64,000 nt of DNA from Zygnema circumcarinatum SAG 698-1b (lineage: Eukaryota; Plantae; Zygnematophyceae): positions 1,798,001-1,862,000 of the forward strand of contig CM074811.1 in NCBI GenBank assembly GCA_037447605.1, in the 5' to 3' direction. Below the pieces are notes generated by a model. It did no database searches. It was given only the letters and a program-made list of their open reading frames with translations, and was not told the origin of the DNA. The first letter of the stretch is position 1, and every line of letters begins with the position of its first letter. The translations under genes and the position numbers were made by a program. This document shows positions 53,792 to 64,000 of the stretch, in pieces.

Positions 53792-61135
<7,344 letters not shown>

Positions 61136-61494
61136 GCTGCACACCTCTCTGTCTCCGCTCTCTTCCTCTTTCTTTCTTCCTCCTTCCTCCTCCCTCCTCT
61201 CTGCCACACGAAAGTAGTGAGAACTTGAGGCCTTCCAAGAATGGTCGCCCCAACTTCCGACCGAGGCGGGCAGTTGCAGGCGAGCGAGAGGTGGCGTACT
61301 GGAAAGAGCAGTTCCATGTGGTCACTCAACCGTTATAGCGTTTAACGGTCACAGACAGCGTTCCAAGCATGTTCCCTGTCACACTATTCCGTTAACGTTC
61401 TTGAGTTATGTTGGAACGGAACTGGAGTTTGGTTCTGTGTTGGAAGTGAGGGAGGAGGAGAGATGTGGGAGGGGGGGAAGGAGGAGGAGCGGCC
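61136..61494. promoter_or_regulatory. Compact (~360 bp ATG-to-ATG) divergent promoter region between NSF and the small ORF
   Basis: Head-to-head ATGs at 61135 (-) and 61495 (+), each preceded by a GA-rich leader like other genes in the window. Confidence 0.55.
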
Positions 61495-62600
61495 ATGGCG
61501 AGTGCGAAGTGGATGTGGGTGGGGCTCTCCGCCGCAGCAGGGTGAGGGCTGGCTACACCCTGACAGGAAGAAGTTATAAGCTTTTCCACAGAGATTCTCT
61601 AAAATGAGCGGTCGCAGGCGGTCTGAGAGTACATGTTGTTCCAAGAATGGAGCAGCCACATCAAGCCTGCATTCTGACACATGTTCATGTACGCATGATT
61701 TCGCGGTAAATGAAATCTATGTATCTTTGACTGCGAAGGTATGAGAGTGGCCAAAGGAAGCAAATTCGAAACACTTGTAACGCTCCGACACGCTTGCCAC
61801 TGGTTCTTCCCGCCCTACAGACAAAAAATGTTGGTTTCCGGCTACAACTTCAGCGTGTCTTCAACCGTGTCTGTCTGTCTGAAGCGTGTCTTCATCTCAA
61901 GGAAAGGAACTTGCAAGTTTTTGTTCCTACATTGTTTGCAGACATCAGGATACGGAGAATATTTTTTTTGTGCTAGCAAGAAACATCCACATCTGTACAT
62001 CAGTTGCTGCTACTGACAAACCAACAGCGAATCAAAAAGATACTTCGCCAATCTTTTGCATGGCTGTGCGTGAGTACATTTTTCATTTTTTGTATAAATG
62101 TTGCCGCCATTCTCATGTCAACGTCAACATACAGCGTGTCCAAAGAAGTTCAGAATTGCTAACCATGGCAACACAAAGCGCTTCTGTTCATGTTTAAGCC
62201 ATTGCTTAGCGTTGAAGGCAAGTAGAGAGTGCACTCCACGAAAGCGCTTCATTCTTAGCGCCATTTTGATTCAGTGACATCGTACCCCAGAATGTTTACA
62301 TAAGGTCCGACATTTTTACATTCCCAGGTCCTCCGTGCACCTATTGGAGTCAAAATGGTCTCTTATAAGGGCTTTTTCCCCGTATCCCGCTCACGACAGT
62401 TGTCCTGGTTTTGATTGTGCTCCTGCAGTTTGCTGGTGCTGACTTTGACAACTAGTGATATCCATCGTTCAATAAAGAATAACGAACAGCCCCCCTCAGC
62501 GGAACAGGTGGCTGCTCTTGAAGCTTACTTGGATGACTTGAAACGATCGCGTCTTGAGAGTACATTGGATACCTTTGGTGAAAAGCGTCCACGCCGCTAG
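61495..62600 (+). CDS. Putative 72-aa single-TM small protein, 2 exons
   Basis: Exons 61495-61541 and 62429-62600 (GG|gtgagg...ctgcag|T) give MASAKWMWVGLSAAAGLLVLTLTTSDIHRSIKNNEQPPSAEQVAALEAYLDDLKRSRLESTLDTFGEKRPRR*; ggccATGG context; no family recognised. Confidence 0.6.
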
Positions 62601-62904
62601 CTGTAAGAAGCCCGACGTTTTCCAATCTATGGTTGCGATACACTACAACTAGATTGGCATGGATTGATTGTCAAAGCTTGAGCTTTTGGTTTGGCGAGAT
62701 TTATATTGCAGTTTTATGATGAGAGAGGATCAATTATCATCAGCATGTGCCACGGGCTTAAATGGCTTGAGGAAGATAGAATGGTTCGCAAGTGATTGTA
62801 AAGCAGGTCTATAATAGAGAACCCTGTAAGTGTGGCTTGGTCATATCGTGTTTAACATTCACTCTGCTAATATCCAACAGGGTTTTTTTCTAATGAATTT
62901 GCAG

Positions 62905-64000
62905 ATGGCTGGAGTGAAAGAAACGATTTCACGACAGAAGCAAGCTTCAGAGGATCGCGAAAGTCGAATGGAAATTATCGGGCTTGTTTCTGATACCCAT
63001 GGAGTGTTGGATGAGTTAGCCCTTGCCCTTCTTCAGGAAGCAACAAGTCTTATTATCCACGCTGGTATTTGCATACAAACGGCTATTGCTTGGACATTCC
63101 TACAGCTGCTTTTGTTAAAACTTAATGTACCAGTTATATTGGCACTCTTCCCTGGCTGTTTCCGCCTAATCGATGTTCACATTGGATTCATGCTTGTGTG
63201 ATAGGAGATGTGGGTGATAGCAAGTATAAGAGCCGTCTCGCCGCATCTGAACTCCTTCAGAGGCTGCGGGATGCAACTGGCAAAGCGGTGGTGGCTGTGC
63301 GGGGCAACGTGGACGAGGCCTGTGATGAAGGGTACGACTGTGGACCTCCCTTACTTTGCTCATGCTCAGGCAATGGCTTTTGAGGTGGGGCTCAAGTTAG
63401 TTTCCTTACTGACGCCACATGGCACTCGAGCCACGAGTGAGTGACTGGTCTTGGGAGTCACTGCTGGTTCTCATTCTTGCTGGGTTTTTGCTTGCATGGT
63501 TAAAAAAGGCCGGTTTTTGCGTAGAGTTGCTTCCATGCTAGGTATGATCCTTGCCTGATTTGCGAGTCATGTCCTTGTGCATTGTCTCAGATCCTTCGTG
63601 GGGAGAAGGATGAACTGTTGCACACAAAATAGATGCCACCAAACATGTTAGCAGATATATTTTTGCTTGCGAAGCATCCGCTGAAAAACGTGTTATGGTG
63701 TCTGGACCTTACGCAGGCTTTTGAATCTCCCGGAGACGCAGTTGTTTACGGTGGCAGGGAAGAATGTGCTCGTTCTGTGAGTGCCTCCTTGCTAGATTTT
63801 GTCAGCAGCTGCTGCGAACTTTTTAAAGGTCCAATTCTCGCTTCTTAAATTGCTCAGCTGTGAACTGAGCTTGCATTCATGCATCATGGATGTGCAGACA
63901 CATTTGTGGATTCCCGACCAATCAGGTGTTAGAAGCGAGGCAGTTGGTGGAGGCCCTGAATCCTGATGTGGTTGTGTTTGGCCATTCGCATGTTCCGAAT
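62905..64000 (+). CDS. YfcE/MJ0936-like metallophosphoesterase (calcineurin-like fold), runs off window end
   Basis: Exons 62905-63064, 63205-63331, 63717-63776, 63898-64000+. Motifs IGLVSDTHG, IIHAGDVG, AVRGNVD, VLVLHICGFP, VVVFGHSHVP. Confidence 0.85.

Follow-up and report, generated by a model that had tools for sequence, protein, structure and literature searches.

Results

Two genes at the end of the window

The region considered here is the end of a 64,000-nucleotide (nt) stretch of the Zygnema circumcarinatum SAG 698-1b genome (the window; assembly GCA_037447605.1, contig CM074811.1, positions 1,798,001 to 1,862,000), where a gene predicted to encode a small membrane protein lies on the plus strand just upstream of a gene for a YfcE-type phosphodiesterase. 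We read the locus as a conserved two-gene unit in which the small membrane protein and the enzyme are encoded on a dicistronic mRNA, and we give this reading a probability of roughly 0.6. A preliminary description of the sequence had proposed a spliced bicistronic mRNA here, and the positions it gave for the ATGs, donors, acceptors, stop codon and a phase-0 GT at 62508 all agree with the sequence.

The first coding exon of the small gene (61495..61541, plus strand; 15 codons and 2 nt) would supply the first half of a membrane helix. Its ATG (61495-61497) opens MASAKWMWVGLSAAAG, the final Gly codon being split GG|T by the donor, with a further in-frame ATG at 61513. Of the 58 ATG...GT candidates of compatible phase in 61200-62428, this exon has the best donor match; by hydrophobicity the variant starting at ATG 61513 ranks first and the form starting at ATG 61495 second. 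Intron 1 (61542..62428, plus strand; 887 nt, phase 2, GT..AG) is predicted from homology and is retained in the RNA contigs seen. It runs from the donor AGG|GTGAGG at 61542 to the acceptor ...ctcctgcag|, which ends at 62428. The second coding exon (62429..62602, plus strand), whose translation from 62430 reads LLVLTLTTSDIHRSIKNNEQPPSAEQVAALEAYLDDLKRSRLESTLDTFGEKRPRR with the core TTxDIHRSIKNNEQPPSxEQ, is coding to 62597 and ends with TAG (62598-62600) followed by CT. Together the 47 and 172 coding nt of the predicted spliced open reading frame (ORF) make 72 codons and a stop.

The inter-cistronic intron (62603..62904, plus strand; 302 nt, GT..AG) has the donor GTAAGA at 62603 and the acceptor ...aatttgcag| up to 62904, so that the phosphodiesterase ATG at 62905 sits directly on the exon junction, 2 nt after the stop of the small ORF once the intron is removed. 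Four enzyme exons, with boundaries corrected from RNA joints, lie in the window on the plus strand. Exon 1 (62905..63064; MAGVKETISRQ...GLVSDTHG...IIHAG) covers positions 3-34 of Pfam PF12850 and is joined 63064^63205 to exon 2 (63205..63331; GDVGD...RGNVDEACDEG), which is joined 63331^63717 to exon 3 (63717..63776; LLNLPETQLFTVAGKNVLVL) and this in turn 63776^63898 to exon 4 (63898..64000; HICGFP...VVVFGHSHVPN), which was located by tblastn with the enzyme of a related contig (L003, below) and is cut by the window end.

The enzyme exons match PF12850 (Metallophos_2) collinearly over profile positions 3-34, 37-59 and 97-119, below the cut-off (E 0.009-0.16) with the exons unjoined and the gene cut by the window end. 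Members of the calcineurin-like superfamily share the metal-binding motifs DxH, GD, GNxD/E, H and GHxH, and the exon translations show SDTHG, HAGDVGD, RGNVDE, LHICG and FGHSHVP. Two orthologues, P0041 and P0043, pass the YfcE model TIGR00040 with 63.7 and 78.8 bits against a cut-off of 56.25.

RNA joins the last exon of the small gene to the enzyme

The stretch was matched in seven RNA runs from three studies, and the contigs of four runs were placed on 58001-64000, with 61162-61200 masked as repeat. Two of these runs, X1 and X2, come from different studies, and their contigs derive from RNA, because seven CT..AC joints in them remove introns of a minus-strand neighbour. Both carry the joint 62602^62905, which skips 302 nt between GT and AG; its depth is 91.7 in X1 and 260.5 in X2, where its shorter sides measure 159 and 30 nt respectively. 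The splice that had been predicted at 62603-62904 is therefore observed in contigs of two studies, where the RNA reads ...CGC UAG CU|AUG GCU.... Contig 5 of X1 (1377 nt) runs 61514-62602, 62905-63063 and 63204-63332, and contig 10 of X2 is unbroken over 61515-62304. Any spliced RNA that holds the last coding exon of the small gene also carries the enzyme gene, which argues for a dicistronic mRNA.

Two further runs from 2017 under the same species label (X8 and X9) gave no match in the 6 kb, even to the strongly expressed neighbour on the minus strand. A different strain or species may be included under that label.

The preliminary description had also raised an internal donor, the phase-0 GT at 62508 (CAG|GTGGCT) in exon 2, from which splicing to 62905 would fuse the membrane segment to the enzyme and let the locus switch between separate proteins and a membrane-anchored phosphodiesterase. 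Of the two junctions it named, 62602^62905 is present and the internal donor is unused in the X1 and X2 contigs, although a joint with a depth of only 7.8 was detected elsewhere in the locus. The GT exists and is in the phase that a fusion needs, but splicing from it would cost the small protein its conserved C-terminal half, and none of 12 phosphodiesterase homologues (ten close, two more distant) begins with small-protein sequence. We consider a fusion isoform very unlikely, and the proposed switch finds no counterpart in the RNA or in the homologues.

A conserved family of small proteins

Exon 2 belongs to a family of single-helix proteins, 50-130 residues long, found across streptophytes. 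An exhaustive HMMER search with it against 1.8 billion representatives returned 26 relatives at E<=1e-3, and 23 of them are proteins of 50-179 residues carrying LLVLGxTTYD[IV]HRSIKxNExPPSxEQ. They come from Urochloa, Canna, Sesamum, Artemisia, Sphagnum, Riccia and Klebsormidium subtile, among other sources, and are always recorded as hypothetical proteins. One relative, P0002, has 72 residues and is 53% identical, its residues 16-66 aligning to query positions 1-51; it has the layout of the predicted spliced 72-residue model, and its N-terminus, MKPPLWFKIGIAGAV, resembles exon 1. A 14-sequence alignment (A1) has ten invariant columns (T, D, H, R, S, I, N, P, P and Q), and all ten residues are encoded in 62430-62597.

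Gene structure is shared as well. In the window, in a Klebsormidium-like contig (L005), in Sphagnum fallax (L007) and in Riccia fluitans (L010), there is an AG acceptor at exactly the same distance, 28 nt, ahead of the D codon in DIHRSI. The conserved intron is in phase 2 and splits the N-terminal membrane helix, its position and phase being identical in the four genomes, and the codon split at the exon-1 donor is one for Gly or Ala in every case compared. The small protein also occurs as a stand-alone annotated gene in Sphagnum, Riccia, Canna, grasses and others. Conservation of the 72-residue ORF, on which the preliminary description had made its proposal depend, is borne out by the family match, the invariant residues and the common intron position. 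Judged by these comparisons, the ORF is a genuine conserved protein gene with one predicted N-terminal membrane helix.

A different view of the upstream exons is that they form a non-coding leader with regulatory upstream ORFs, in which the 72-codon frame arose by chance. The contigs are unspliced there, a run of 61 sense codons is no rarity in random sequence, and the small ORF has no Pfam family. Against this stand the 26 significant relatives, the ten invariant residues, the conserved intron position and the stand-alone family genes annotated in mosses, liverworts and angiosperms, and we regard a chance frame as extremely improbable. Our own first reading was of this kind, drawn from the unspliced contig 61514-62602, a 16-codon ORF at 61495 and the lack of an ATG in the frame of exon 2; the search of representatives overturned it.

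No family model in Pfam or NCBIfam matches the small protein, a profile search of the PDB gave chance matches only and no solved structure, and a literature search for the family's sequence motif found no match. A word-index protein search likewise returned nothing for exon 2, nor for the first enzyme exon inside its ORF; these blanks say little, because P0002, which shares three 5-residue words with exon 2, was not returned either. An Atlas feature search placed the small protein near small mitochondrial inner-membrane proteins (COX6C and SMIM20, scores 0.83-0.84), which we take as a lead only.

The pair is linked in other streptophytes

The order seen in the window, small ORF then phosphoesterase, recurs in several streptophyte algae and one liverwort, in line with the conserved linkage that the preliminary description had suggested as a check. 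The most direct case is a GC-rich alga, represented by Logan contigs from four runs (L001-L004): here the 72-residue P0002 ORF is followed after 37 nt by a 214-residue PF12850 ORF, both uninterrupted. These contigs are RNA, because L004 lacks 19 nt ending exactly at a conserved exon junction. The gap (at about 914 in L004, 903-921 in L003) ends at the junction that matches the window intron 63777-63897. In this alga both complete ORFs share one spliced RNA contig. The 19-nt loss itself is explained by an alternative GC-type donor, AAG|GCAAGA, and shifts the phosphodiesterase frame.

In the Klebsormidium-like contig L005, exon 1 encodes MIHPDRLTPFGKVAIFVGG and is followed by the conserved intron, exon 2 and then TAG T|GTTAGT; a candidate acceptor (...ccttgcag|) lies 8 nt before the enzyme ATG, and four enzyme exons follow. 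The pair is also linked in L006, which is grouped with L005. Klebsormidium nitens (L011) has two annotated genes with a gap of 110 nt and a possible donor 4 nt past the stop of the small ORF. For Klebsormidium subtile the record of the small protein names it '.p2' of a Trinity transcript, and we read this as one of at least two ORFs on that transcript. In the liverwort Calypogeia fissa (L017, 5867-6041), exon 2 of the small ORF ends TGA G|GTAATT, and the enzyme is annotated to start at an ATG 39 nt before the small-ORF stop, in another frame and with the same donor. A splice donor thus follows the small-ORF stop closely in three genomes, after 2 nt in the window and after 1 nt in both L005 and Calypogeia.

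Public annotation handles the small gene unevenly. In Klebsormidium nitens (L011, 6001-7383) its model is inflated to 179 residues, the conserved protein beginning at MIHPDRL. Calypogeia fissa has no small-gene model, and its enzyme is started at an ATG within the last 39 nt of the small ORF. A moss-like metagenome contig (L019, 1029-1050) has a donor-like AAG|GTAGGG 9 nt after the small-ORF stop; no enzyme exon is found in its remaining 280 nt, a flank too short to judge linkage.

The neighbouring gene

Head to head with the pair, its ATG about 360 nt from ATG 61495, lies a minus-strand gene with CDC48_N, CDC48_2 and AAA matches, which we take to be an NSF-like AAA ATPase. Its first coding exon (60873..61135, minus strand) is spliced in X1 and X2. 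The intergenic region of about 360 nt is flanked by a CT pyrimidine-rich tract (61140-61215) and a purine-rich tract (GGAGGAGG, 61440-61494). Intron 60480-60872 of this gene (minus strand), removed in both RNA runs, has AT...AC ends, begins ATATCCTC and carries CCTTAAC about 10 nt before its 3' end; it looks like a U12-type intron of the minor spliceosome. No NSF-like sequence was found next to the pair in L001-L006 or L011, and the head-to-head neighbour therefore stands outside the conserved unit.

Discussion

A probable conserved two-gene transcription unit

We propose a model where gene 1 (61495-61541 and 62429-62600) would encode the 72-residue protein, with its stop 2 nt before a 5' splice site, and removal of the 302-nt intron would then leave 2 nt between that stop and the start codon of gene 2, an AUG. 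The two halves of the proposed mRNA stand differently: the joint between exon 2 and the enzyme is present in RNA, whereas that between exons 1 and 2 was not seen in the X1 and X2 contigs. We infer that the molecules carrying the enzyme also have exon 1 spliced to exon 2, and the two proteins probably share one messenger RNA.

Several observations weigh against this reading, and they concern the 5' part of the RNA, the distribution of the pairing and the translation of the second ORF. The joint 61541^62429 is missing from the X1 and X2 contigs, and ATG 61495, with all of 61401-61513, is covered by no RNA contig. The contigs of both studies start at 61514/61515, after ATG 61495, and continue unspliced through intron 1, giving a 1089-nt leader that holds 18 ATGs from 61514 (19 counting that at 61513); the frame of exon 2 has no ATG of its own. 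Moreover, contigs cannot prove single molecules, nor do they show the 5' ends of RNAs.

Left unspliced, ATG 61495 opens only 16 codons. A 91-residue ORF of the leader matched no recorded sequence. A minor GT..AG intron of 124 nt (62305..62428, plus strand), which shares its acceptor with intron 1 and was found in X2 only (joint 62304^62429, depth 7.8), does not help, because the part upstream of 62305 has no in-frame ATG and this form therefore cannot encode the small protein. The shared contig start, 19 nt after ATG 61495, is an oddity in itself that neither a transcription start nor an assembly branch explains fully; a graph branch at the donor was rejected as its cause, as this would predict 61512.

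Depth along the locus bears on how RNA enters exon 2. In X2, where path depths are approximate, being computed from bin depths on the assumption that no contig is missing, the path over 61515-62304 has a depth of 28, the unspliced path across 62428/62429 about 9 and the 124-nt-spliced path 7.8, while exon 2 (62429-62602) reaches about 246 and the enzyme exons 260. The rise is about ten-fold, the step is located at the acceptor 62429, and the estimate from X1 is compatible. It follows that about nine tenths of exon-2 RNA enters at or just after 62429, by a route unseen in the contigs. The step would fit exon-1 splicing and would also fit an internal transcription start, and in this respect it belongs with the points against a dicistron.

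An internal start leads to a view of the locus as overlapping units: most enzyme mRNA would arise from a promoter at or just after 62429 and be monocistronic with a leader of about 170 nt, while a rarer RNA joining exon 1 to exon 2 would make the small protein and run into the enzyme gene, the enzyme not being meaningfully translated from it. The ten-fold step and the uncovered 5' exon agree with this view, as do the strong context of the gene-1 AUG and the near lack of AUGs in the 170-nt leader, whose sole AUG opens AUG-ACU-UGA. RNA contigs of one land-plant enzyme homologue likewise have a leader of only about 180 nt with no small ORF.

On the other side, the depth step coincides with a splice acceptor conserved in four genomes, and the unspliced depth of about 9 just upstream argues against a start before 62429. 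The sole TATA-like element (TTATAAG, 62363-62369) would then be too distant; we rejected it as a promoter, the unspliced X2 depth over 62275-62458 being only about 9. Tight linkage and the donor beside the stop are also conserved, and a spacer of 37 nt on RNA elsewhere leaves little room for a promoter outside gene 1. Contigs drop variants, filters remove records, and a short 5' exon on a node with a long incoming path is, we suppose, a branch of the kind removed by assembler clean-up, so that loss of exon 1 through tip-clipping or filtering is likely; the purine-rich tract at 61440-61494 could also have been filtered out. Because short 5' exons are so easily lost from contigs, the missing exon-1 joint counts for little. 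On balance we consider separate promoters somewhat unlikely, though a serious competing explanation.

The two-gene unit is also not universal. The Sphagnum and Riccia loci have the small gene without the enzyme, and no small gene accompanies the enzyme in the chlorophyte Coccomyxa or, within 10 kb, in the fern Ceratopteris. The order of the genes, the intron of gene 1 and the stop-adjacent donor are kept from Klebsormidium-type algae to a liverwort, and this points to long-standing co-expression and not to an accident of annotation.

How the second ORF might be translated

On the dicistronic model, the enzyme would be translated from the shared RNA. We regard leaky scanning past the gene-1 AUG as the likeliest route, perhaps aided by a very short 5' untranslated region (UTR). 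Such scanning has been shown experimentally for chlorophyte bicistrons, where it is governed by the length of the 5' UTR, the context of the AUG and the AUGs in between (PMC11291117). In the window, one in-frame and one out-of-frame AUG lie between AUG 61495 and the enzyme AUG, and the out-of-frame one (62533) should not block scanning, because it opens only AUG-ACU-UGA. The context of AUG 61495 is strong, with G at both -3 and +4, and the enzyme AUG of the spliced RNA shares these two bases. The strong first AUG and a small ORF not depleted of AUGs both speak against simple leaky scanning.

In Zygnema circumcarinatum, where the spacer is only 2 nt, reinitiation may contribute as well. Reinitiation after 72 codons is usually inefficient, a further difficulty for the model. 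The preliminary description had tied termination-reinitiation to the 2-nt spacer, and as a conserved mechanism this is not supported: the two ORFs are 2 nt apart in the window, 37 nt apart in L003 and no more than 110 nt apart in Klebsormidium nitens, and they overlap by 39 nt in the Calypogeia annotation, so that the 2-nt spacing is not the conserved element.

A ribosome that terminates at 62600 would still have four or more exon junctions ahead of it, which may make the RNA a target of nonsense-mediated decay; such sensitivity has been reported for Arabidopsis polycistronic read-through RNAs (PMC9768141). It is tempting to speculate further that this is an ancient streptophyte dicistron, predating the split of Klebsormidium and land plants, in which a membrane microprotein that flowering plants still have and a YfcE-type phosphodiesterase, made from one mRNA, act together, for example with the microprotein as membrane partner or regulator. 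The post-stop donor would then tie the end of ORF 1 translation to an exon junction, and in this way control either how much of each product is made or, by way of nonsense-mediated decay, how stable the mRNA is. In this extended form we think the proposal unlikely, and offer it tentatively.

Implications

To our knowledge, bicistronic nuclear mRNAs are well documented in chlorophytes and in a few land-plant cases, and hardly in streptophyte algae. Beyond adding a candidate there, the locus draws attention to an unnamed family of single-helix proteins present in mosses, liverworts and flowering plants, and provides a functional lead for it in a possible partnership with a YfcE-type phosphodiesterase. 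With an AUG 2 nt past a stop, directly on an exon junction, it may also serve as a clean test case for ribosome access to a second ORF. For annotation, the lesson is that such a small gene is easily missed or merged; its model is inflated in Klebsormidium nitens, and in Calypogeia the enzyme model begins within the small ORF.

Comparison with known systems

The enzyme of the window shares the DxH, GD, GNxD and GHxH motifs of the YfcE family (TIGR00040), and differs in being eukaryotic and intron-containing, with an N-terminal extension of 21 residues. In having a conserved coding frame upstream of a main ORF on the same RNA, the locus resembles those with conserved-peptide upstream ORFs (CPuORFs). 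Here, however, the frame spans 72 residues with a membrane helix, and since many plants have the peptide as a gene of its own, its conservation is that of a protein and not of a ribosome-stalling peptide; we therefore do not regard it as a regulatory CPuORF.

A closer likeness is to the polycistronic nuclear mRNAs of chlorophytes (Gallaher et al. 2021, PMC7896298), for which leaky scanning has been studied (PMC11291117). Common to both are two unrelated conserved ORFs on one strand at a very short distance, a short first ORF for a small membrane protein (compare the TOM22 and OST4 loci used there) and a linkage kept between distant species. The present pair is absent from the main text of PMC7896298, where 'phosphoesterase' occurs 0 times. 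It differs from the chlorophyte cases in occurring in streptophytes (Zygnema, another alga, Klebsormidium and a liverwort), in having an intron between the cistrons directly after the stop in several taxa, and in a first AUG of strong context with a first ORF that is not AUG-depleted.

CDC26-TTM3, a bicistronic plant transcript discussed in PMC11291117 and PMC9768141, offers a second parallel. As described there, a small conserved gene for a true protein likewise precedes a phosphohydrolase-type enzyme on one mRNA of the plant lineage. The proteins are other ones here, an unnamed single-helix protein and a YfcE-type phosphodiesterase, and the loci compared in a moss, a fern and a thalloid liverwort either lack the linkage or have lost it. 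With these likenesses and differences in view, the Zygnema locus is a probable dicistronic unit that would work like the chlorophyte polycistrons and CDC26-TTM3.

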